A DNA stretch of 64,000 bases, taken from assembly GCA_904063045.1 (NCBI GenBank), contig CAJFCJ010000001.1, positions 3,162,001-3,226,000 of the forward strand. Direction: 5' to 3'. Under the pieces are notes generated by a model, which ran no database searches, had not been told where the DNA came from, and was given only the letters and a program-made list of their open reading frames with translations. Of this stretch, positions 10,966 through 61,135 are shown in pieces (positions within the stretch are counted from its first letter, which is position 1; each line of letters begins with the position of its first letter). The stretch is from Dimorphilus gyrociliatus. Its lineage: Eukaryota; Animalia; Annelida. The position numbers and the translations under genes were made by a program.

Positions 10966-11148
10966 TAAAAGAATTACATATACAAGTATATATTTACATA
11001 TATAGCTATATATATACTATATACTATAGCTATATACATATTATGATTAACATATTACAAATAATACAGTATATAATACATGAAGTTTAATAATAATAAT
11101 AGAATCTTTACCTATATAAGAAAGAACACATCGCCCAAAACATTTTTT
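7888..11148 (-). other. mbl: Probable long 3' UTR of mbl
   Basis: Minus-strand excess of YGCY and of conserved miRNA seed matches at 8.1-8.75 kb; AATAAA candidates at 10786, 8486 and 7888-7905. The 3' end cannot be fixed from sequence alone. Confidence 0.5.
10681..10975. repeat. Two compound (TA)n/(TACA) tracts
   Basis: Tracts at ~10681-10740 and ~10918-10975. Confidence 0.85.
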
Positions 11149-11183
11149 TCAAAACCTCTGAATATTGCCCGGATGTCCGGTAA
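11149..11183 (-). CDS. mbl: mbl last coding exon
   Basis: ttttcttacag| acceptor; the phase 1 join gives [11 protein letters not shown] followed by TGA. Confidence 0.8.
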
Positions 11184-14100
11184 CTGTAAGAAAAAGATTA
11201 CGTAATCGATTGAGCTAATGTAGAACCAGGGTAAAAGAAGATACAAAGTAGCGGCCAAAAGTTATTACTCAACCTTTTATAATATAATTAAAAAATATAC
11301 ATCTAAACCTAGCTAATAGATGGTACTTAAAATAATTAAATCTATCCTGGGATATTTTAGGTAGTAACATACTAGTATATAGAATACACTAGTATAACAA
11401 GCTCAAATACCTAGGCCATAATGCACAGTAGGTTAGTTTTATTGTGATATTGACGAGATATATTTAATTATTCGGCTACTACATACGTTATACAGTATTT
11501 CATTTTAATATTCTAGTAATTTAGCCGTAAATTATACAATGTAAAAAATAATTACAATTAATAATCTAACGTTACTTTCTTAACCGCAATAATATCTGTA
11601 TACTGCTTATTTGTAGACTATTTGGCTCTTTATCATCGATTAAATTAATTTTTCAAGCAAATGTAAGTCAATTTATAGTTAGTTGCATTATCTACAGCAA
11701 TATACTATAAAATTTAAGATACATATATAGATATTCCTTTCTTTATTGCAATAGTATACTGTAAAAATATAAAGGGTAAGTAAATCATCAGCTATTACAT
11801 ATCACATTTACAAAAACTTCGTAGCAATATTTCGATAGCTTATTATTCAGTATAATAATCCGCTTGTGTGCGATTACTTCAATTTTCAGGGCATTAAATG
11901 ATAACCCTCCTCCCACTCCCATATTACAATCCGATTAAAGCAAAATGGCCTCTCTTATACGCTATACAGTACTTCATTATCTATACATATACATATATTC
12001 GTCTCAGTTACTAGTAATTGAATATTTTAACAATTTTCAAGTGAAAAATTTTTTTGTTCCATTCAATATCGATATATCAATTTACCATTAAAAATGTTCG
12101 TTATTGAAATCCAGTAGGTTTAGATTTTATGTTTTCCTTTTTTTTTTAATAAAAAAAAAACCTAAAGGGAAATCACGTAGTATGAGAAAAAAAAACCGAA
12201 AATTCTTTTTCTATAATGTTTCGAATGATTTACATGTAAACTTTGCTTTAGTAAATACCAACATTCCGTTTGAACTTTTATCTACACTTTTTTTTCTTAT
12301 CATAAACAGAAATTTTAGAATAGTATTCGTATTTAATGTAATCTATCGGCGGACACCGAGTCTTAAATGAAAATTTCTTACTGATACGGTGTCCCATTTG
12401 AATAAAATTTACCGCTGGTATCTTCTTGTTTATACTTAAGTAAAAGACACTCACGAGGCATAAAACCGCCGGCCGTTAAATGTGGATAAGCGGCCGGTAT
12501 ATAAGCCATCTGCTGTTGACTAAAGACGGAAGTCGGTAGAATGGAAGCGGGCATCGATACTGGAATTGCAGTCGGAAGTTGGTGTGCGGGGCCATAAGCG
12601 GATAATGAAGGCACTCCACTCTTGTCCACTGCCAACCTCTTAATATTCGGTGCCAAAAGACTATGTGCAGGATTCTGCTGTAAATAAACAAAAAACATTT
12701 GTTAGTTTCTTCCGGTCGCCTCCATATTTCTATACAGGGGGCGATTTAAATGCAAATTTCTTTCTTTGTACCAACGACTACGTGACCAGAATATCAAGTA
12801 AAATATTATCTTATTACTTTTGTTCTTGACTATTACCTTGTTCAGTTAAAACTGTACCATCCTTTTAAGATGACAAATAAATAAATAAAAAAAAAAGATT
12901 TATGGAAATTTATGGAAATTGCATGAATTAGAAATGATTTGTCGGTATGATTGTTATCAGGAATGAGAAATTAAACGTCTCTATTCTGTAAATTACAAAT
13001 AATTTACAACTGTACAATTTCAACGCAAAGGAAAATTAAATTAAATAAATAATCTTTCATTTTTAGAATCTATAAAAAGAATTTAAAAAATATTATTCCT
13101 TTACTTGATCTGAGAGTAGATTGACTAATCAAGTATTACAGATATATTTCATTCTTTTAAATACATCGCTTTGTAACAAAAAAAATGAATATGTCAACTA
13201 TACATAGCCCTAAAGCTATATATATATATATTAAATAAATTTTCTTGATTACTCATTTTCAGTATTTATTTTCCTTCTTTCTCTCTTTCTCTTTCTTTCT
13301 TTCTTTCTTTCTTTCTCTCTCTCTCTCTCTACAAATATTCTGGTCTCGTAGATTCTCTTAGAAAAAAAAAACGCTCGAGCGCAAGTGCTATATATAAATA
13401 TATAGATATATATGTTAATATACGATTTCTAAGTATACTGCCTTAAAAATGTGTTGAATAGCATGCAAGAAGTTTAGGCGACGTGCAAAATATAGATTGA
13501 ATAGATGAATTGTAAAAGTAGTAAATATAATAAATATATATATATATACATATATAGCGATATATATATATATAAACATTATGAATTGCTTAATTTTCAC
13601 TGTGAAAAGAATTATTAATACTATAAACTACTAAAAAAAAATCATCTTTCATTTGTTGGGGTTTTTTTTTTCATTTTGATCTAAACTACTAAATTATTTT
13701 CTTGTTTCGAGATTATTCTCGACGCAATATTTCGATTTCTAATAAAGTTAATTTAGCTGAGGCGAAATGGGCGAATTTGCTGTTTAAAGGCTGCGAAAAT
13801 TTAGGATATTTAACCATGCAACTGCAACCATTTTGTTTTAAAGATTTTCTCTAAAAACAAATACCATTTGATTACATAATTATAGAGATACTTTTTAATT
13901 TCATTGCCTAGCGATAGATTTTTTTCGCTCTTCTATGCGTTAATTCGTTAAAAAAAGGCCTAATGCTTAAAATGGGCTTTTAAAAATTTGTTAAAAAGGA
14001 TTAATGGAAAAAAAACGGAAAACGATTGCAGTCAGTCAAAAATCAACAACTTAAACAAATGCAGCCAAAAGGAAAAAAAGTGAAAAAAATGACGCCCATT

Positions 14101-17100
14101 TCGCTCCATCACCGTCGTCCAGCCTAAAACTATTACAGAAAGACCAGTACCAGAACTGCCACGGTCGGCGTATCGTCTTCGTGAGGTCGTTTTTTTCCTT
14201 GACCACTGTCCAGTGCAGTAGCAGGCTGTAGTGGTTACAACAGAAAGCGACGGCGCGAGCAGCAGACGAGGAAGGCGAAGGAGCGAGAAAGGGAAAACAA
14301 AAAAAGCGGCTTCGTCAAAAATGATTCATGCAAAAAATAAAAATAAAAAAGTAGAAGTATTTTGTTTTATATAATTGACTCCGCAAAAGAATAAATAAAC
14401 CAAAGAAACTAAATAAATGAAGTTAATAATTTCATTATGTGCAGTAGTTGAATAATGAGTTGATATAATAATTAATAATTAATAGCTTCTTAGAAGAATA
14501 TCACACGTATAAAAATTCTCATTATTTTTGGCAGCAAATTTAATTTCAATAAACATATTCCTTTTAATAAAACGTCCCTTCATATTCTATTACTTAAGTG
14601 AATCTAAAAATCATGCTTCAACTACCGATAATGCGGAATCCATTATTAAAACAGTAATTTTTTGCAGGGTGCAGTGAGTAACCGGCGCTGATTAATAAAT
14701 TATACAGCTTAAAAGTTCCTTTTTCAGAGAAAAAGCAAAAAAAAGGTTGTTTTCGGGTCGTGCTGTTTTTAATTTAGATGCGCTTACTGCCTACACTTAT
14801 TGCTGGATTATATACCGCAAAAAATTGTTTAAATAGTGCTATTTGCTCAGGGCACTCTTCTCCTCAAAACTCTGCTATGCTATGTTTGCATACGTAGAGC
14901 TTCTCGAAAGAAATCAATTAGGTATGGGAGGAGAAAAATTTTTTTAATGATTCAAGAAACAATCATCTATAGAAAAGAAAGAAAAATATTTTACAGTATA
15001 ATTACATTGTATAAACAGCAATACATTTGTGTACGTAATTAATAATTTTCTTTTTAATTTTAGAATAATAGATATCTTTCTACTCTTTTGTTGCAAGCTT
15101 ATTCCTCCTTTTAGATTATCTAAACAACTTTGCCTATTTTATATGTTATATCTCTTTCTGATGAGGAAATATATTGTACATTCTTTGTAATATTCAAAAT
15201 GGAATTACTAATTACAACTAATGTCAAAATCTTAATAAAATACTTCCCACTAGTATGAAACTCGACACTTACAAATTAAGTAATAATTAGAGTAAAGTAA
15301 ACTCTAATCAGGCTTTTTTCTCTTTTAAGGTTTTAACCTTGTTGAAAGTTTGTGGAAATCAACTGAGCCTTACTTTAAATTGTAAACGATTGTAATTTAA
15401 TACCAGCTTAATACTATATATAACTCAAGCTTGGTACAAACTGGAGATTTGATCTCATTCAGAGACAGAGGGAATTATCATACAATTCGTTAGATCAAAG
15501 TATTCCCTTTTCAAAATGGGATATTTTGGTCATCGAATACAAAGCACGGCCCGAAAAACAAATTTTAGGCGAATCAGTAATCAAACTTTAGCCCGACCAA
15601 AGCAGCAACTATGAAAGACAAACACGACATACCAGTTACCCATTGCATAAAGACTGCTGCTGTCAAACTCAAAAAGGCTGCTTGCTATGAAACCACGCCC
15701 TAACAAACTCGCCTTTTGATTGTCTAGTTAACAATTTAGAAATCTTTTCAAAAACGGCGCTTTAACGAAGGAATTATATAAAATGCCAACGCATATCTGC
15801 GTCAACAGGAGCACACTCGAAAATGACCATGTACATGAGTATAGAAATATATATTCATGTATACATTAAACGTAAATCCTAAATACGAACACATTCACAC
15901 TTCCTCACTCTCAGAACGTAAAGAGATATATATCCACATATTCATATATGCATACTTAAATATATGTTATATGAATCTATATTCTGTATAAATACAAAAT
16001 ATATAATCTATATATATATACATTTAAGTATCTATATATGATAATAATTTGTATATACGGTCGATATTTACAGTATATACAAAAACAAACGAAGAAAATG
16101 TGACGCATGCGTCACCAACCTGAGGCACGTAATAGTCGGATGGTGTTGTAGAGGTTGCGTAGTCGGCGTTTGTCATGTTGCCGTTCATATCCACAGCGTC
16201 CAACTGTAAACAATTCCACATTGTTTTCCCATGTTTTTTTTAGGGATTGTAGAAAAATTTTTGTTGATAAAGACATGCAAACATCTAATGAAAACTCAAG
16301 CTTTTGCAGAAGTTAAACATGCCACTGACACTTAAAAAAAAAAATTTCTCTTGTGCATGGAATAGAATTCTAGTCTAATTTTTTTAAATATTCAGATAGA
16401 GTGTTGAAGAAATTATCAATTAGTATTTTTCTGTTTCTCATCATAGGTTTTAATTTGTAATATATTCCATATATGTGTATATATAAAATTTAATATATAC
16501 ATATATTGGTTCAAAGGAAAAACGTTTTTTTTTTAAATGACATAAGAGAGATGTGAAAAATATTGAAGGGAGAAAAAATAATACAAAAATTATTAAAGAG
16601 TTGTTAACTGTGAGCGATAAAAATCTAGCATCTTTGAGTTATTTCAAAAGCTTTTTCCAGTAAGTTATTTAGTAAAGATAAAAAAAAATATAGCTCAGCT
16701 TAGCTTTCTTTTATATAGAAAAAGAGTTCTTTTTTAATTTATAATAAAGCTTTTAAACGAAAACAAAGAGAAAAAGTATATAAAGTATGATATTTTTTAA
16801 AACTTTTTTGATATTACTTAATTTCTTTAAAACAAAAACTATATTAAGAAATGAGAAGATAAGATGCTAATTTTGTTTTCTACTCTTCTTTAATATTACA
16901 TAAATGTTGTTATATATATAGTTTTATATAAAAATTAATAATTGAACTAATAAGATAATTTTCCAACAGCTAACTATTTAATTTCAGTATTTAACAAAAC
17001 TGATGGTGTTACTTTCGAATTTTCAAGAAAAAGGGTGCTTTTTGCTGATGAACTTGTTCCTTGTGATTTAAGAGAACCTTGAGTTGTTCAAATTCTCGAT

Positions 17101-20100
17101 TTTGACAGAAGAAAAATAATAATTAAAAATGTATACACGAGGCTCTCACTCAAGACATGCGAAGAAAAAAAAAAGTATACGACATGCATTGATAAAGCGG
17201 AAAAAATAAAACCAAAAGACAAACAACAACTAGAACAACTCAAAAAAGAATAGCAACAGGCAGCCATTTTGATTTTGACAACAAGCTTATCAAAATTTTA
17301 ACTTAAAAATTTTGCAAAAAGAATTTACAATATAAATGAGATAATTTTTGGTTTATAAATACTTACCTCAGCTACATTTGACGCTGTTCTAATAACCGTC
17401 TTTGTAGTTGTAGCTGAAGTGGAAGGAGTCGAACTAACCGAGGGTGTTGGACTGTTAGCACTTGTTTGTTCGGCGTTTGCGAAAATGTTTGCAGTTGGTG
17501 CAAGATTTTGCGCTTGAAAAAGAGCCGAATTGTAGGCGGGATGGTAGAGGGCTGGGTTTTGGTAGGCAGTCTGCTAAAAGGTATAAAAATATAATTAATT
17601 TTTTTAAATAGAATATTAAAATGGTAATTTAAATACAAAGACTAGGATTTGTTATATAATATATTAATAATAATAATTACATTATGAATTTAACTAAGAA
17701 AAAGAGAACTGCTAAATTCTACTATAATTTCTACATTTGGCTTAAAAGAATTTAGATATCAGTTACTATTTTTTTCTCTTTGTTTTGCAAGATAAGACAA
17801 ATTTTGTTTTATTTGTCGTCAGAAAATACAAGACACAACAATCTACATAATATGGAAAAAAAGAAAAGAGGTTTGATGGCAGAACACAAGAGGGAATATG
17901 GGACGGGTTCACTACAGCTATCAAATTTCAAAATGATGGCAGATTTACTTATCCTATATACACACGTATATATATAAAGATTTTATGCTTCTTTTATATC
18001 CTATAAAGCTAAACTACTCATCACTATTAGTCGTATATTTTAGAAAGATATAAAGTAAAGACTGAAAGGTCAGATCGAAATATATCCATACGAATTGCAT
18101 TGATAAAGTCTATATATAAGCAATTAACTATTAATCATTTATCATAGTGAAAATATTTATTTAAGTAAAGCTTAGAATGTATTACTAATGTTACCTTTTT
18201 AAGAATAGACTCAATACAAAAACAATAATATTAAAATCGTGTTTTTTTACTCTGATTATCAACTGTAATAGAAAAGTAGAAGAGGAAAAAAATATAATAT
18301 TTGTACTTAAGTTTAAAATAAAATAGTATAAACTACTGATACAAGAAAAAGTATTGTGTTGGCTGCCATAATATATTCATTGTAATATAAAAAATTACGT
18401 TTCAATAGATAATTTTATCTCTTAGATAAATAATTCTCTGTCTTTTTTATATTTTACAGGTATGTGTTTTTTTTTCTTATTTGTTCGTTGCAAATTTATC
18501 ATTCATTTTAAATAAATCATAGTTTTCCTGCTTGCGTAGTCCAATAGAATGTGATTTATTTTTTTTAATAGAAATACACTTAATAATAAATATCACTTTT
18601 TTAGCTAAGCAAAAAATTAGCAGTTTAATTTAAAGCTTGAGTAAACTTTTAAGAAGCATTGCCATACGAAGTGTTAAAAACCAGTCTATTCGAATACAGA
18701 ATAAACTAACCTAATTTACACAATACAAATGAAGATATATCATTAAATAGATACAATTGACATCTAAATTGTCAGCACAAAATTTAGGTCAACCCAATTA
18801 GCTGGTCCTAATTGGAAAATGAGCACTAATTTAATGAACAAACAGTTTAGCTTCACAGTACTTGTAAGCTTTGTAAACTATATTAAACAAAACTTAATTT
18901 CGTAAAAATCTGTAAGTTAAAATTGCCATACTTGAAAGTAAGTAAAAAAAAAAATAAATTGCCTAAACTTTAATAACACAAATATATGGTTAATTACACA
19001 AATTCCTTACTTATATTGTGCGGAAAAAACAATAAAAATCTCGTTTTTCCCTCTCTAAATATCAAGTTTTACATTATTAAAACCGAACAATTTATCTTAC
19101 AGAGTGCTTTCATTATTTCCTTTGTAACTGACAGTTAAAACATCAAAGTTTTTGCAATTGTTAAATAAAAAAGCGTGTGAGAAAAATTAAAACTGAAATT
19201 AAAAAAAAGGCAAAAAAAATTCTTTACGAACCAAAGCTGCTGCAGGTGAAGTAGCGCCGGCTTGAACGCTGGGCAGCAACGGATATTGCAGCGGCTGGAT
19301 AGTAAACAACAACAATAGCGAAAAACAAACAGCGACATGCTTCAAAAAATAAGAATTGAAGGGAGGTACTTTGCAGTTCTTAATAGAAAACAATCAGTTT
19401 TTTTTCTAGCATATATATATTTTTAATATATAAAATCTTCTAATGCTTTTCTACTATAATTTTAAATTATTTATATAGTATTTTTATATACAATTAGGAT
19501 ATGTGAAATTATTTTTATTTCAACTAATCTAATAAAACTTATTAATTATTCATTGCAAAAAAAAACCTATAAAAAAACCTTGAATTGTTTTGAAACATCA
19601 ATGAATAATTATTAATGATAATTCATCTGTTAACTGATTACAATTGGCGTCAGATAACAGTAATTACGTATAGCATATTGTCTAATACGTTCAATTATTA
19701 TGTACAAAAAATATTTTTTTCGATTAATTGTTCAACTTCAAAGCCTTAAAAAGTAAACTGAGTGTTTTCAATAAAAACAGCTTTTGCGAATATCTAATAA
19801 TGGTGCCAATTGTCAGTTGTTCTAAAATTATACACCTCAAAAAAATAAAGCCAAAATAAAACCCTGTTATTTTCTTTAAAGCATTAAAATTTCCACTTAC
19901 CAAAACTGGTTGCGAAGAAGTTTGCAAAATGTGCTGGGGTGCTGGTGCTGTAGGAGCACCAGCGGTAGGCAACAAAGTCGGTTGCATAGACTGCGCTAGG
20001 GCCGTCATTTGAATTTGTCGCATTATTAAGTTATTCCTGCCATTTTGCAGTAGTTGCTCTCTCAAATGCTGTGGTGGATGAAGGTATTTGCAAGGCGGCT

Positions 20101-23100
20101 CCCTGCGCTGGCATTTGCCCTAAACAAGAAAAAAAATCGAACATGAATGTTAGTCATCGATCGTTTTTAGGCGTCGTCGCGACGCCGGCGTTCGTTACGC
20201 AACACTGGAGCCGCAGTTCCTAATTGACTATTGCAGTTTTTGTAACCAGACTATTTTTTTTTTTTGAATAAATTCTAGCTTTAGAGCAAAAATTTGCAAA
20301 ATCGTACTTAGGGGAATAACATATAATAAAAGAAAACAAAAACAATGCAAGTACATTAAATCCTGGTCTGAAAAGAAAGCATTTCGATTAATGTTACATT
20401 TCTAATTTCAAGAGCTTTTTCAATCTTATAAACGACCTATAAGTAAAGTCATATACATTGTTTTTAGGACACGCCTCCTAAAATATTCACATAATGCAAC
20501 AATTCTCTTTTTTTTGCTTTAATGTCTCAGATACTTAATACAGAGACGAATAGCTAATGTACTCTTGGTGACGTTTACGAGTTCTTAATGTCTTTTTCTA
20601 TTCAACTATGATGAAAATACTCTAATTTAGTGATACAAGCCAGCGTTGGACAAATGATAAAAAAGAAAAGAAACAATACTGAGTCAAGTTACAGGGGAAT
20701 GAGTGTTACTTTGTTACATGGAAGTTACGAAATGAAAAGAATGCTAGCCCATGGGCTCATTTTTCTTCACTTATTTTATCAAATGATAAAAAAAAACTCT
20801 TAACATCTTACTAAAACGAATTGATTACTCCATCTATTATTCGCGGCCGGTCGATATTTTCCAGCCAGTCCCTTCAACGGACTTTAAATAAAAACAATAA
20901 AAACAGTCCTTTTGCTCAATGATTTTTAGTAGTCTCAGCAGTGCAAAACAACGATCGTGAGATACTTTACAAATAAGTTGGTTTCTTCCGTTCCGGGGGC
21001 GACTTACGAGTGAAAGCATCACTCGTTTAATATTAAATAGGCCAAGTAACTTGATATCGTATCTCGTTCACCCATAGCAAAGAGAGCATTTACAACGTCT
21101 ATATTTATATGTAGATATACATCTACATATATAAATAATCTCAATGTTTATAATTTATAAATAAAATGTTGCAGCTTCCGAAATAAATTAAATAGAATTC
21201 TCTTATACTTTTTTTTTATCCATATATTCCTCTCAACTCCCAAGCCCAGATTCCCTTGTAAAATGTAAATAAATTCCCTTTTCTAGCAGTCTCTCGCTGC
21301 TGTTTAATTGAGACAATGTAGAGGAAACTAACAGCTGTAAGAGCTGTTGAAAATGTTTGCTCTTCCCAATAATCCATAAAAATAGTTAGGATGAACGGAA
21401 TAGGATAAAAATGATTATTTGCTTAATTTTTCCATCACAATATAGTGCTATAGCGCTGTGCATTCCTTAAAAATATAATCGGAATAATTCAATGAATATG
21501 TATTGGAGTAGAATGGAGTTTATTACAGGATTTCATGAAGGGTAAAATTTCTAATTCCATATTCAGAATAGAATATTTTTAAGAGTCATAATACAATCTC
21601 TAATGAAAATAGAAGGCTAATAAAATGCTAAAAGACCAAAACACCCATGAGGTTTGTTTATCAATGTTTACCATGCTAAAATAGCATAGGGTTGAAAACT
21701 CCAACATCTGTTACGCAACAACACTGCAGGAGATCGACGTATTCTTGTCTTTTATAACAGCAAATGCACGACAAAATTAGATCAGGCAATAAAAACTCTG
21801 AAATTGTGCATGTTTTAGCACTTGTATCCAGGCGGGAATCACAAATTTAGAAACGCAAGTATCTTTCCATTTGGGTTATATAATATCAAAGGTCGTATAT
21901 AAATAAAAATTATAAAGGACTGCAATAATTTATAAACAGAAGGTCACTAGGCGCTTTTGATAAGTTCTACGAAATCTAAGTGGCTGAAATAGAAAAGCGA
22001 ACAATTTTACAGAATTACAGGGAAAAAAACTAACGTGCAGACACACCACACACATATATATATATACACAAAATGGGAGAACTTAAAGTTTACATCCGTC
22101 TCTAAACAAACGGTTCATAACAAGTCTTTGGCTTCAAGATAAAAAAAATAAGAATCAAATAAACAGAAGAAAGAAAAAATTACATCCAGAGGACATCTTC
22201 TTTCATCTAATAGCAAATATATCGTAAAATGAAAATAAAAAGGTATTAAAACATTTTAATCGAACTTAAAATGCCTTGTCGATTGTAAAGAAATTAGCTT
22301 TTAAAAAAAAAGCCAACCGATCGAATATAAGAAAATTTTATTATTGAAAATAAAAGAGGATAAAATCCCATAAGAAGAACTTGTAGGAAATCTTGTATGC
22401 TGGAATTGATCGAACGAAAAGTCAAGTCATTTATATTAACTATAATATACTATATAAGTATATAGGACAAAAGAAAGCGAGATAATGTAAATGAGAAAAG
22501 AAACAACACACTCTCTTTTAAAAGAATAGAAAAATAGATTATTCTAATATCGGGTTGTGGGAAAGCTGGAGGGAAGCTTGTGCATTCAATAGACAGTAAC
22601 CTACTTCATATAAGGCTGCATCTAATTGACTTTTATTTATTAAATATCAATAAAAAAGCCAGTGTGCATACAGGCGGTAAGAGTATCAAAAGAAGAGAAA
22701 AATAACATCATATAACAGCGTGACTCGTATTTTTTTTTAAAGGAAAAAATGTTCTTATTTAATGAATAAGTGATCTTGTTTCAAAACAAGTACATCTTGA
22801 ATATCAATAGCTTCATTATAGCAATCACCTATTAAGAGTAAAATGTTAATTGTACTTTTAAATCCAATAGACGACTAATAAGAGAAATCATTAAAAGGTC
22901 ATAGAGAAATACTTCCATAAAAGATATACCGAAAAATCAAAAGAAAATAGATTTACGATTTTAACATCAGTTGTGGCTTACTAGTTCAGTGATTAACAAT
23001 TTTCATGAAATATTTATTCAACTGACAATGAATGACTAAGCTAAAAAAAGTGATTCATTTTATTATGTTTACAGGAAGTTGTAGTCATTCACCAAGAAGC

Positions 23101-24849
23101 GACGTTTTATATTTTGTTTGCAGAAAATCCTCTTTAGCATAACTAGCGTCTAATATGGGAAAATGATAAAGAGAGTGGGGATAAAGTACTGATCAGAAAA
23201 AATTTAATGCTATTTTTCTTTTTTTCCAATTATAGAATTTCATCTGCTTAAAATTCGAAACGACAATTGAAAATCACTTGCAGAAATATCAGAAATCAAA
23301 CTATTGATTAGAGCATAAAAATCAGGAAAGCAAGACTTAACTTGTCAAGCAGGCAATACGGAAAAATCTGTACTAATGTACAAACACCAAATATTTAACT
23401 TGACACTTCAAAGTGGAGCTCAAATGAAAAAATAAAACGAAAAGTTAAATAGGATAAAGAGTGAGGGGATAAAGAGAAGTATTGCATAAAACTTCGGCAA
23501 TGATTAAAAACTATGTATATTGCCGGAGGCATTTGATAGATGCCGCTTACCAAAATATCTTATTTATATTTGATTTCAATAGTGGAAGGGTGGGAATTGC
23601 TGGGTGGTAAGTCTCTATCAGTAACAGGTTATACGTTGCTGTATACATTATTCATTTATCTATCTATCTATATAGAGAGATATTGTAAGGGAAATGAACA
23701 AGTTTAGATGTTCAATTTAGCAAACACTCTAAATAATGAACTACAAAACTAAAAAAAACATTAAGATAACAGCCTTAAGCATAAACACTTTGCGTAAAGA
23801 AAAAAAATACTTGCAAAACATGAGAAAAAGCTGACAAAAACAGCAAAGAAAAAAAAGTCAGCGTCCCAGCCGACAGAAAAAGAAAAACAGTTACCCTCAC
23901 GCAACGTCACGTCCGTACTAACACAGTCAATAAACTCCACAATTAATATATGGGGAATTTCCATTTCGATTAATGAATTGAAGTCATTGTAGTAAAGATA
24001 CGTAAAAAAACATAAAACAAATTTTAACTTGTCTATCAACCGTTAAAAGGTAAACTGAATTGAAATAAATAAGAGTGCTCAGGGGAAAAAAACGATAAAG
24101 AATTTCCTTTCTCCATCTTTGCTCTTTAATTAGGTCATTCGATATCAATGCAAAGAAAATGGAAGTCATCAATTTCCGTAAAAAATGATTAAATCAGCCT
24201 TCTATTGGCATCACGAAAAGCATCACCTCAATGTGCTTAGCATTATGAAATTAATAACGGATCGTTTCCATCTATTATGTATCACTGTCAACAAGTAAAG
24301 CTGGCTGACTTAAAAACAGCGAGGTGGTTTTAAGAAAATTTTATCGGAAAGTCGAACTATCTATGGACAAGAGCGTAAAAGAAAGGCATAATCCACTCTC
24401 TTGTCATTCGTGAGAGCACTAATAATATAAATTGCACTGAGAATTTCTGAAAGATCAAACCTATACCTACAGAAGTCGCATCTGCCTAAAGACACACTTA
24501 ACACGTCTCAAATTGATTCAATGTGGGGAATCTTACTGCAAGATGAGCAGCATTCAAATGCTTAACTTTAACATATAATATGGCCAGCGGTAAAAAGGGC
24601 CAAAGATAGAACGTAGTCAACAAGGTCAAAAAATCAATAAAATGCTGATCAACTTACTTTAATACTGTCAAAACAGCAAATAACCCTTCCATTGTTGACC
24701 TCTACATGTTGCGGTGGATGAGCGAATTTACATTCTTCGGCCGTACGGGAACATTTGTCCCGTTGAAATTCTCGACATACTTCCAATGTCAACCATCTGG
24801 AGTCCTTGACTTGCGCCAGGTTGTGCAGAATTGGGTTGATGGCGCTCAT
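11149..24849 (-). CDS. mbl: Muscleblind RNA-binding protein (two CCCH zinc fingers), 8 coding exons, ~365 aa
   Basis: Joined exons 24849-24658, 20119-19901, 19294-19232, 17573-17367, 16203-16120, 14225-14151, 12677-12455 and 11183-11149 total 1098 nt with no internal stop and GT-AG at every junction. The N-terminus [29 protein letters not shown]|[22 protein letters not shown] is the MBNL ZnF1-2 signature. The protein ends QRF*. Confidence 0.95.
12455..12677 (-). CDS. mbl: mbl coding exon 7 (contains KRLAVDKSG motif)
   Basis: tttacagCAG tandem acceptor; [23 protein letters not shown]...GGFMP, similar to MBNL KRPALEK; donor C|GTGAGT, phase 1. Confidence 0.9.
14151..14225 (-). CDS. mbl: mbl coding exon 6 (75 nt, phase 0-0) with KKRP basic motif
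   Basis: ctacag| acceptor; [25 protein letters not shown]; donor CTG|GTACTG. KRP resembles the NLS half carried by the alternative exon of MBNL1. Not in the ORF track. Confidence 0.8.
16120..16203 (-). CDS. mbl: mbl coding exon 5 (84 nt, phase 0-0)
   Basis: tttacag| acceptor; [28 protein letters not shown]; donor CAG|GTTGGT. Confidence 0.8.
17367..17573 (-). CDS. mbl: mbl coding exon 4 (207 nt, phase 0-0)
   Basis: ttttagCAG tandem acceptor; [22 protein letters not shown]...NVAE, a different frame from the ORF-track call; donor GAG|GTAAGT. Confidence 0.85.
19232..19294 (-). CDS. mbl: mbl coding exon 3 (63 nt, phase 0-0)
   Basis: atccag| acceptor; [21 protein letters not shown]; weak donor GTTCGT; frame matches both neighbouring exons. 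Confidence 0.75.
19901..20119 (-). CDS. mbl: mbl coding exon 2 (rest of ZnF2 and linker)
   Basis: tttag|GGCAAATGC acceptor; [31 protein letters not shown]...QPVL; donor GTAAGT at 19900. Confidence 0.96.
24658..24849 (-). CDS. mbl: mbl coding exon 1 (ZnF1 and start of ZnF2)
   Basis: ATG at 24849; [28 protein letters not shown]...CFDSIK; donor GTAAGT at 24657, phase 0, at the same position as the FDSLK|GRC intron of vertebrate MBNL1. Confidence 0.97.
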
Positions 24850-25939
24850 TGTTGATTTTGTTTCTAAGTCTTGTCTAATGCTGGTCTGAAATTTCGTTTA
24901 TTATTACTCTAATGGGTTATTGATAAAAGAGAGTATACATTTTCAAAGTAAACGATCGTTATACGTTTCAATATATATACATATTATTTCAATATATATA
25001 TACGTCTGTTCGTATATATATATATATATATATGTACGCATGATATATTTTAAAATTATACAATTTTCTATTGTATTTTGCCTTATTGTCTTTTTAAAGG
25101 AATGTTCTAAATACTCTTTCCGCTCTTTTTTCTTTTAAACAATTTAATCAATGTAATTGAATTAAATACATTTTTAACAATTGTTTTTTTTCAACAATGA
25201 CTAGACTTGTATTTATTTATACGAAATATAGCTTTTCTATAGAGAAGTTATGTTATCGTTGAGGATTTATATACTTGTTACTGCACAGTATTATCGATTA
25301 TACTTATTTAATAATAGGATTTCGACTTCAAACAGATTTATGTACGCAATACAGCCAAGTTAAATTTTCTATCCGTAGATTGTATTTTCTCTATTGAAAG
25401 ACGATACAAAAGCAGTAAAACGTCAACCAATTATTATTATCATTATTATTTTGAAGCGTCGAAATTGGATAATTAGTCTCTTTCACAAATTCATCCAAGA
25501 CGTACATTAATAATCATGCTAACGATATGAAAAGGAAGTAAGGATAATTCTATTAGGAGTGAAATCTGTATGCCTTCTTCTCTAATGTGGTTGTGGAGGT
25601 TATTTAAAGTATCAAGTCAGGCGATCTACTCTTGCTACATGATACGAATAAAATAAAGAATAGCGGTCCAGCTCTTCCTTTATACATTGTATTGTTTTTA
25701 TATATAGAAGGCTGTATGATGAGGCCCACAAAAGTAAAAAAGAGAACAATTAACAATTAGAATGCTATTAATAACTGTAAGGTATTTAAAACGAATCTTT
25801 TAAACCAATAAAGCTATGGGTTAACTCTTTAAATTAGACAATATAAGCAAGCTTTTTGTAATTTACAATAAAATTGATATACAGGATATTAAGTGTTAAA
25901 AAAAAGATATAATGCTGTAGGATATAGTACTGTATCTAT

Positions 25940-58200: not shown

Positions 58201-61135
58201 CAGAACGTAAAAATAGCGCAATTTATTGAGGGCGATAGGTAGAGAAGAAGAGAGAAGGTGGAGGAGGAGGTGGGGGAGGAGGATGAGTAATGGAGAAAAA
58301 ATAGATGAGAAATGATTAAATAGTCCTAGCAGTAGGAAATGGATAAGATTATCAGCAGAAAATGTTATTCTCTTTATTTAATTATTTTCCAATAGTTTCT
58401 CTTATCTAATTTCATTTCTACTAATTTGTGTCCGACCAAAAAGAACATTTGGTTCTAATTAATTCTTTAAGAGCTTGTCGTTTTACAAAGTTATCTTTAC
58501 TTCTGCTCTTTATCATTCAAAAAATTTTTCCGATATAGATTAACCAATCAACTTTGAACATCCATTTTTATATTGGAAAATAGGAGCATTTTCATATTGA
58601 TTTATTCGGGTACTCTATGTTTTTGCTATAATAAATCAATACTTTTTATCGTTTTCAGAAAAAGTAGATTAGATCATTAAGTGTGACACATTAATTAGTT
58701 TGTACCTTTCATATGTTGTACCTAAAAAATAATACCACCTCCCTCGTTTCCCTTTTATCACCAATCTCTATTGTAAATTATAGAGTACAGCTAAACATAA
58801 AGTTATACTTGATCAACTTATGTTTTCTCCTTTTTCTTGTTTAGAGTATTTATACTCTTAAAGGATAGATGAAGGGGGGGAGGAGTAGGCGTAAAGAAAA
58901 CAGAGTAAAAAGAGCAGGGATGAGAAGAGAAAGACAAAGGAGGATAAAGAAACAAGAAAATAGGATACATGGAATAGCATGTATGTACAGTTTATATATA
59001 TATATATATAAATTTATATATACTGTATATAAAGTATACTATATTTGTATATTTACCCTGATTTTGCAAAGTTAACCCATAATCTTCCCATTAACATAGA
59101 CAAATCTCTTTCTTTTTTGCTAAATTCAAATTTCGGATACCTTTTCAATGGTTCGCCAAAAATAAATAAAATTTCATCGCCGTGCAAGGCTCCCATCCAT
59201 TTTGGCCATGGATTATTATCGAATCGATGAGTGTAGTAATAATAATAAACTCGTTGGCCAGCTTTATCGTAATAATCTCCAAATTGATTGACATAACATA
59301 CAAATTGATGGTCTGAAACGGCGGCATCCAAGCTCGCCAAGTTCGCCTCAGTATCGTCGTAATTGGCGTGATGAGCATATTGAAAATGAATTGCGTCTAA
59401 TCCAAAGCTATTGATTCTCATTGGATATTGAGGAAAGTATTCAAACAGCTTCCTCAAACCACTTTTATAAGTAGATGAATCCATTGTAGAATAGGTCAAA
59501 TTAATCCAATTGCTAAGTTCATAAATCATAAAGAAACTGGCTTCATTGGCATTTGATCCCAGAATAATTGGGCATTTCTTAAAACTTCCGTGAAAAAGCG
59601 AAGAATTAGGATGTTCGGTTAGGAAAACACCATCTATAACAGGTATAAAAGGAAATTGCATTATTCCTCTAGAAACTCCTAGCCATTGTCTTTCAATAAG
59701 ATATTCATAACTTTGATTTTTTAAGCATTGTACAATATAATCTACGGGCGTATTGGAAGACTTTTTGCAACCGACCAATTTGGCGAAATGTTTCGCTCTA
59801 GCATGCGCCTGTTCTATCGTGAGGGTTGCCCAAGGCATATTGGCAGTTCCAGATTGCATAATTGCTCTATTAAACAAATTCCAGGAATGAGATGACAAAA
59901 GGTGCATGGACACCGATACAGAGCCAGCCGATTCACCGAATAACGTTACGTTCTTTGGATCTCCACCGAAAGCTGAAATGTGCTGCTGAACCCATTTAAG
60001 GGCTACTCTCTGATCAAATAAACCAACGTTAGCTGGTGTATCTTTATGAGGCAAATGCATAAAACCAAGCGCTCCTACTCTATAATTTATTGAGACGACA
60101 ATAATATCCTGTTCAGCCGCTAATATCCTACCATTATAAAGAGGTAAACTAGTTGTACCACCATAAAACCCTCCACCGTATATCCAGACCATTACGCCCG
60201 CCTTTGTAAGACGTCTCCTGGGTCGTACTGGCCTCCAGATGTTCAGATAGAGGCAGTCTTCATCCATATTCGCTTTATCAGGATTCCACATATCGGATCC
60301 TGGAAAACTGCCGAATACTTCGTCCATTGTTTGAGGACATGACGCTGGAAGACGATTGGCCTTGAATGGCTTCACCCATTTATGATCCCAGGGTATGGGC
60401 ATCCTGAAACGAAGATCACCCACTGGGGGTTTTGCGTATGGTATCCCGAGAAAAGCATCCACCTGCTTTCCGCCAAGGTTTTTCAGTGTATGTCGAGCAC
60501 CATGAATTTTACCGAGGTTATGTAACCTAGTAAAATTTTGCGGATGAAAGGAATATAAGGGATCTAAAAGATCTTTACTATTATTATTATTAAATGCTTT
60601 ATTATTAATACTATTAAACTTTTAACTTAAAAAAGTCTTCCTTACAATTTTCGACGTTTTAGTATATCTTTTCGCTTTTCATTAACTTGCCTAGTGCCTA
60701 GAATGCCAATGACGGCCTTGTGTGAGTTAAACCAGGCAGCTGGGAATCAAATAACAAAATATACTGATCTAGTGCTAGTTGCCTTGTCATGCTATACAAT
60801 ATTTGAATTTTCATTATATATATATAATCTTCATGCAAATTAAGTAATCATAAAGTAAAAGTTTAAACTTTTTATGTATTAACTAAAGCAAAGAAGGAAG
60901 AACATTTGTTATTCATTTTATAGAAAAAAAAGAAGAAAAAGTAAAAGAAAAAGAAAAACTTGGACAACTTTTAACCGTTTTAAATACTGTAAATTAAGAA
61001 TAGAAGATGGGTTGATTTGTTTCTTTTAAATCCTTATATTTATTCCACCCACAACCTGACGGAAAAAGAACTTCGATGTTGTCTTCCCAAAGCCAAAGCG
61101 AACAAAAGCAGTAATCTTGCAGCTAAGTCACTCAT
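52178..61135 (-). CDS. ace: Acetylcholinesterase, T (tailed) type, ~623 aa, 4 coding exons
   Basis: Exons 61135-61056 (signal peptide), 60526-59057, 55328-55117 and 52287-52178 total 1872 nt in frame. Motifs: FLGIPYA, WNP (W84), EDCLYLN, YGGGFY oxyanion hole, FGESAG (S200), NEASFF (E327), LHGDEI (H440), six disulfide Cys. Confidence 0.96.
55117..55328 (-). CDS. ace: AChE exon GDPN...CVFWLDYMPNLIRST
   Basis: ctctttag| acceptor, phase 2; donor G|GTAGGT, phase 1; same boundaries as the penultimate exon of vertebrate cholinesterases. Confidence 0.93.
59057..60526 (-). CDS. ace: AChE main catalytic exon (1470 nt)
   Basis: ORF-track 469 aa ORF extended upstream to the ttttactag| acceptor; ends FAKSG with donor GG|GTAAAT. 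Confidence 0.97.
61056..61135 (-). CDS. ace: AChE signal-peptide exon
   Basis: MSDLAARLLLLFALALGRQHRSSFSV; phase 2 donor AG|GTTGTG (alternative TT|GTGGGT) matches the phase 2 acceptor at 60527. Confidence 0.8.

Follow-up and report, generated by a model that had tools for sequence, protein, structure and literature searches.

A candidate muscleblind KR-exon autoregulatory switch in the annelid Dimorphilus gyrociliatus

We analysed a 64-kb stretch of the genome of the annelid Dimorphilus gyrociliatus (hereafter the window; ~29% G+C), in which a muscleblind gene, mbl, is read on the minus strand. The sixth coding exon of this gene, which carries the first of two KR motifs, is preceded by a C-rich intron end that contains no AG and holds seven YGCY motifs, and it is probably an annelid instance of the known switch through which Muscleblind (Mbl) proteins regulate the splicing of their own KR-motif exon. 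Relatives carry the orthologous exon as a cassette; for Dimorphilus itself we infer the skipping of exon 6, its binding by and dependence on Mbl, and an effect on protein localisation. A literature search found no paper linking muscleblind with Dimorphilus.

Human MBNL1 represses its own exon 5 through a YGCY region of 90 nucleotides (nt), bounded on one side by a far-distal branch point (−141) and on the other by a weak 3′ splice site (the parts of PMC7901844 used here, summarising Gates et al. 2011). This agrees with the paradigm from which an earlier, sequence-only reading of the stretch had started, namely an exon bearing a nuclear localisation signal (NLS) that is repressed through upstream YGCY sites. 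The human exon 5 minigene is also repressed by the Mbl proteins of Ciona, Drosophila, C. elegans and Trichoplax (PMC5041496). The passages of Verbeeren et al. (2023, PMC10773944) available to us report, for every bilaterian phylum outside Ambulacraria, a double KR motif split over neighbouring exons, and describe the first KR exon as consistently alternatively spliced. They also report that the feedback loop has been demonstrated in C. elegans, where the upstream intron holds YGCY sites and a functional FOX-1 GCAUG, that FOX-1 represses the orthologous exon through this upstream GCAUG, and that co-regulation and autoregulation coexist. Although these passages credit nearly all bilaterian phyla with the arrangement, they name no annelid. 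MBL-1 is confined to the nucleus by two KR motifs (Lee & Zheng 2026, PMC13191465). The ancient bilaterian circuit suggested in the sequence-only reading agrees with what those passages of PMC10773944 say but is not new, the evolutionary claim having been published there already, so the Dimorphilus exon would be a further member of a known switch.

Identity of the first KR exon and its behaviour in relatives

Exons 1 and 2 encode the two CCCH zinc fingers of the protein (Pfam zf-CCCH_10, 1.2e-10 for exon 1 and 5.1e-11 for exon 2). Their identity to Mbl proteins from many phyla is 60-78%, and both were matched in a tblastn search with 150 Mbl relatives. The arrangement that marks the Muscleblind/MBNL family, CCCH zinc fingers in tandem flanked by RD/KWL and KxQL/NGR motifs, is present, and on these features we identify the gene as muscleblind. 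Our sequence-based model divides the coding region into seven exons, with phase 0 at every junction (Table 1). It agrees with the sequence-only reading in numbering the KR exon as the sixth, and the sequence at its coordinates matches the description given there of a symmetric, 75-nt exon encoding GKKRP. The claim that the following exon supplies KRLAVDK was likewise borne out, in exon 7, which starts at 12677. Between GKKRP and KRLAVDK lie 24 residues; exons 6 and 7 place the two KR motifs of a long bipartite NLS on adjacent exons, and both motifs align to their counterparts in other phyla. On the plus strand, no open reading frame (ORF) of at least 60 amino acids overlaps exon 6 or the tract that precedes it.

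Mbl relatives collected by a search with exon 2 carry two KR motifs in their C-terminal halves. The first lies in a segment (KR1) with the consensus P...GKKRPRD..D.L.L, and the second (KR2) takes the form KRxAxxDxKSGxPVYQP. Aligned to the KR1 segment are Dimorphilus exon 6 and sequences from Lineus, several snails, Panonychus, Amphibalanus, Spodoptera, Diploptera and Trichuris, and exon 5 of vertebrate MBNL1 (TQSAVKSLKRPLEATFDL) aligns to it as well. From these alignments, exon 6 is well supported as the orthologue of the exon carrying the first KR motif, that is, of the 54-nt exon 5 of human MBNL1 and exon 7 of C. elegans mbl-1. With the KR1 cassettes of spiralians and arthropods (PQVVEVLT.GKKRPRDPxDDLxL; Lingula, Patella, Lineus, snails, cockroach, moth) it shares its position before the KR2 exon, the P...GKKRP..acidic..L frame and a GTAC donor, although the Dimorphilus peptide has diverged (PATALDSGQ versus PQVVEVLT) and is three codons longer.

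In relatives, the orthologous KR1 exon is a cassette. Isoforms X3 and X6 of Lingula anatina contain PQVVEVLTGKKRPREPSDDLIL, and isoforms X5 and X8 lack exactly that segment of 22 amino acids and are otherwise identical. The same kind of 22-amino-acid exon, PQVVEVITSKKRPREIADDLVL, is exactly what distinguishes the transcript-derived protein P0282 from P0027 and P0281, otherwise identical isoforms of one further species represented by transcript assemblies.

Two observations on single species stand apart. The KR1 exon of Patella vulgata (PQVVEVLTAGKKRPRDPADDLVL, L003:54947-55015) is missing from the three annotated isoforms that we retrieved (X1-X3). In the flatworm Macrostomum lignano (L007), a KR1-like candidate, ..ASKKRKLTELND.., lies at ~11840-11973 in the long intron before the KR2 exon, with a TGCATG ~20 nt upstream; it is unverified and was not used as evidence.

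The intron end upstream of exon 6

The nearest AG upstream of the exon 6 acceptor lies at 14311-14310, which leaves an AG-free zone of 82 nt composed of 38% C, 41% T, 16% G and 5% A. It contains exactly seven YGCY motifs (at 14308, 14285, 14277, 14264, 14261, 14255 and 14249), placed 21 to 80 nt from exon 6. The lack of AG, the unusual C-richness and the seven motifs described in the sequence-only reading were thus all confirmed, the 38% C comparing with 9-24% in the 100-nt flanks that precede the remaining six mbl exons, each of these flanks holding 0-2 YGCY. Mononucleotide shuffles of the tract yielded 3.05 YGCY on average (P = 0.014 for at least seven), only 0.44% of 100-nt windows over the 14-kb gene reach seven, and on the minus strand of the whole window only two other places reach six. 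The enrichment of the tract in YGCY and C is real, and its distinguishing feature is C-richness with embedded GC steps. As in the MBNL KR-exon switch, the intron before the exon ends in a YGCY cluster, with a significance that hinges on the null model.

Adenines occur within the AG-free zone only at −11, −10, −7 and −4, and the nearest yUnAy match, found by motif scan, places its adenine 90 nt from exon 6, so a distal branch point is plausible and is predicted near −90. Folding of the tract RNA was no better than that of shuffled sequences (z = +0.66), with no excess of secondary structure, and an Rfam scan of 11000-16400 gave no match.

The donor sites divide the exons of the gene into two groups. 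Exons 1, 2, 4 and 7 have GTAAGT or GTGAGT and are likely constitutive, and exons 3, 5 and 6, which are short and symmetric, have weak ones (GTTCGT, GTTGGT and GTACTG, respectively). Weak donors on short symmetric exons are the pattern expected of optional exons.

In the mechanism that we favour, abundant nuclear Mbl would bind the AG-free tract at its seven YGCY motifs, downstream of a distal branch point predicted at about −90, and its presence there would hinder recognition of the 3′ splice site of exon 6. The weak GTAC donor would add to this poor recognition, and the exon would be skipped. Loss of its 75 nt would keep the frame and leave only the second KR motif, KRLAVDK of exon 7; a product without the first KR motif would be less strictly nuclear, which would close a negative feedback loop. 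That the same loop operates in this distant invertebrate, as the sequence-only reading proposed, finds support in the identity of the gene, the homology of the exon, its cassette behaviour in relatives and the YGCY-dense, AG-free intron ends of Patella and Diploptera; skipping, Mbl control and localisation in Dimorphilus are what we infer.

The control layout in other genomes and competing explanations

We applied the same analysis to Dimorphilus and to the genomic loci of Patella vulgata, the cockroach Diploptera punctata and the moth Spodoptera exigua (Table 1). The sequence-only reading had called for an alignment of the intron end across spiralians. Of the three species compared, Patella and Diploptera have a long, AG-free and YGCY-dense upstream intron end, and Spodoptera is not enriched. 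The KR1 donor begins with GTAC, a weak site, in four of four genomic copies, and exon 6 ends CTG/GTAC as in Patella and Diploptera. Downstream of the donor, these two species differ from Dimorphilus in carrying GCTTTGCATG at 15-25 nt, and ATGCTTTGCATGT, with an Rbfox-type GCAUG, is common to both at this distance into the intron. In Spodoptera the element takes the form GCTTTGCACG, and Dimorphilus has instead a TGCATG upstream of the AG-free zone. A perfect TACTAAT abuts the KR1 acceptor AG in Patella (TACTAATTAG, L003:54936-54946) and Diploptera (TACTAATAG, L005:32480-32489), too near the AG for a normal branch point.

Set beside human and mouse MBNL1 exon 5 (Gates et al. 2011 and Kino et al. 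2015, as cited in the parts of PMC7901844 and PMC10773944 used here), the Dimorphilus exon is alike in that KR2 starts the next exon (KRPALEK in human, KRLAVDK in Dimorphilus), and, compared with the human exon, in that multiple YGCY precede the 3′ splice site, over ~90 nt downstream of a distal branch point in human and over 82 nt in Dimorphilus. The two differ in exon length (54 nt versus 75 nt), in the acceptor (a weak AAG versus CAG), in the branch point (mapped at −141 versus guessed at about −90), in the ultraconserved element in which the human exon sits, and in the single zinc-finger pair of the Dimorphilus protein. Exon 7 of C. elegans mbl-1 belongs, like exon 6, to an invertebrate Mbl with one zinc-finger pair, with KR1 on an alternative exon, KR2 on the next, and a neighbouring intron that holds YGCY sites as well as a GCAUG; however, it encodes 75 amino acids versus 25. 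Autoregulation, FOX-1 co-regulation and the effect on localisation have been shown by experiment in the nematode.

Several observations weigh against an Mbl-controlled switch in Dimorphilus. When shuffles preserved dinucleotides, 5.5 YGCY were expected and the seven observed were not significant (P = 0.20), a control that retains the GC steps of which YGCY itself is made. The 82-nt AG-free zone claimed in the sequence-only reading is present, but its length is ordinary in this AT-rich gene, because the zones before exons 2, 4 and 5 measure 83, 66 and 79 nt; of the gaps between successive AGs on the minus strand, about 2% are at least 82 nt. The GCTTTGCATG element of Patella and Diploptera is absent downstream of exon 6. 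The last 100 nt before the Spodoptera KR1 exon show no YGCY excess, and YGCY is denser further up its short intron. The tract is also rich in CU- and UCUU-type motifs that other pyrimidine-binding proteins could use. Finally, a word search with the exon 7 frame for an annotated Dimorphilus Mbl protein gave nothing within the length band, and an exhaustive search of representative proteins with exon 2 returned 447 relatives, none of them nearly identical.

The shuffle result, the ordinary AG-free length and the missing downstream element are all to be expected if exon 6 is the KR1 orthologue but constitutive in Dimorphilus, its C-rich tract being an unusual polypyrimidine tract without Mbl feedback. 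A miniaturised, compacted genome that also lost the exon for zinc fingers 3 and 4 makes such an exon conceivable. We nevertheless regard this explanation as unlikely: the other six upstream flanks are neither C-rich nor YGCY-dense, the exon 6 donor is the weak GTAC conserved across phyla where exons 1, 2, 4 and 7 have GTAAGT or GTGAGT, and the relatives that we compared use the orthologous exon as a cassette, which the passages of PMC10773944 cited above describe as consistently alternative.

A second explanation accepts a regulated cassette and assigns its control mainly to factors other than Mbl, either Rbfox acting through the TGCATG ~100 nt upstream of exon 6 or a PTB-like protein on the CU-rich tract, which contains CTTTCTC and CTTCCTC runs. 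The upstream GCAUG through which C. elegans FOX-1 represses the orthologous exon (same passages of PMC10773944) and the conserved GCATG beside the KR1 exon of Patella and Diploptera fit this proposal. The Dimorphilus TGCATG is suggestive only, because the minus strand has 15 TGCATG in 64 kb; one within about 120 nt corresponds to a chance expectation of roughly 3%, and its position is not conserved with other species. What exceeds the tract's own base composition is YGCY rather than a plain CU run, and in C. elegans co-regulation and autoregulation, by the same account, are not mutually exclusive. We consider this second explanation distinctly improbable.

The failure of both protein searches to return an annotated Dimorphilus Mbl would also fit a third explanation, in which the interval assigned to exon 6 is no exon at all and represents a chance open frame with AG/GT borders in a long intron. 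This we hold to be very improbable, given a GKKRP..acidic..VL peptide that can be aligned to KR1 exons from many phyla, a G+C content of 55% versus ~29% in the window, an in-phase position directly upstream of the KR2 exon and the CTG/GTAC border already noted.

Taken as an annelid member of the Mbl KR-exon switch, exon 6 is a good but expected example that opens no new question; it adds an annelid with a very small genome to a loop that mammals and nematodes are already described as having and that is inferred in most other bilaterians. What is new is modest and concerns the cis layout: a YGCY cluster in an AG-free intron end, combined with a weak GTAC donor, recurs in Dimorphilus, a mollusc and a cockroach. 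Across phyla, the literature consulted documents only the KR motifs and alternative splicing. Tentatively, the RNA control module itself, beyond the KR peptide, might be shared by descent among protostome phyla, possibly with vertebrates too, and might consist of a long AG-free, YGCY-dense intron end, a suboptimal CTG/GTAC donor and a nearby GCAUG. Dimorphilus would then possess a stripped-down version that kept the YGCY silencer and lost GCTTTGCATG. If so, the module would rank among the oldest conserved intronic splicing-regulatory architectures. Provided that the switch and its cis layout hold, Dimorphilus, with its compact genome and an Mbl with a single zinc-finger pair, would be a convenient minimal system in which to dissect the switch. 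The recurrence of the cis layout across phyla merits a systematic survey.

Other exons of mbl and the rest of the window

Table 1. Positions of mbl features in the Dimorphilus window and of the KR1 region in three other genomes
Feature	Position	Strand	Basis and remarks
mbl exon 1, ATG and CCCH zinc finger 1	24849-24658	minus	Pfam, tblastn
mbl exon 2, zinc finger 2 and linker	20119-19901	minus	donor GTAAGT; Pfam, tblastn
mbl exon 3	19294-19232	minus	63 nt; weak donor GTTCGT; itself YGCY-rich; model from sequence only
mbl exon 4	17573-17367	minus	207 nt; donor GTAAGT; basis as for exon 3
mbl candidate exon 5	16203-16120	minus	84 nt; phase 0; weak donor GTTGGT; basis as for exon 3, unverified
TGCATG (Rbfox-type GCAUG)	14332-14327	minus	just upstream of the AG-free zone
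Nearest branch-point-like yUnAy match, UUGAC	14318-14314	minus	A at 14315, 90 nt from exon 6; motif scan only
AG-free, C/T-rich tract with seven YGCY	14309-14228	minus	82 nt; putative splicing silencer bound by Mbl, between the predicted branch point and the acceptor
3′ splice site AG of exon 6, ..CCACTACAG	14227-14226	minus	sequence
mbl exon 6	14225-14151	minus	75 nt; phase 0 to phase 0; putative cassette exon; homology and cassette behaviour of the orthologous exon in relatives
GKKRP (first KR motif), inside exon 6	14198-14184	minus	
Weak 5′ splice site GTACTG of exon 6	14150-14145	minus	sequence
mbl exon 7, second KR motif	12677-12455	minus	possible donor GTGAGT at 12454; sequence
KRLAVDK (second KR motif), inside exon 7	12641-12621	minus	
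Patella vulgata KR1 exon	L003:54947-55015		AG-free 254 nt; 11 YGCY, 9 in last 100 nt; densest 100-nt window in 63-kb locus
Diploptera punctata KR1 exon	L005:32490-32567		AG-free 97 nt; 5 YGCY; top 0.7% in locus
Spodoptera exigua KR1 exon	L004:4649-4738		AG-free about 65 nt; 2-3 YGCY; not enriched
Downstream element region	L003:55016-55050, L005:32568-32595, L004:4739-4770		just past the KR1 donor

Among the remaining exons, candidate exon 5 stands out by its 51% G+C inside an AT-rich intron. If the possible donor at 12454 is not used, the exon 7 frame continues to a stop codon at 12383-12381. No exon for zinc fingers 3 and 4 was found in the window (12000-25000, minus strand), where Patella has one at L003:51273-51563; Dimorphilus Mbl thus resembles the fly and worm proteins in apparently having only one pair of zinc fingers.

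Exon 3 together with its acceptor region (19345-19232, minus strand) ranks second in the gene for YGCY density, with at least six per 82 nt, and this exon could be a second Mbl-sensitive optional exon. Tandem NAGNAG acceptors precede exon 7 (CAGCAG, 12680-12675) and exon 4 (TAGCAG, 17576-17571) and could allow the gain or loss of one glutamine codon at each.

Elsewhere in the window, the minus strand carries at 59053-60462 a single-exon, carboxylesterase/acetylcholinesterase-like ORF of 469 amino acids. Its 100% identity to DgyrCDS819 of Dimorphilus gyrociliatus identifies the species. At ~50950, on the downstream side of this gene, lies the sole other place on the minus strand of the window with seven YGCY per 82 nt.

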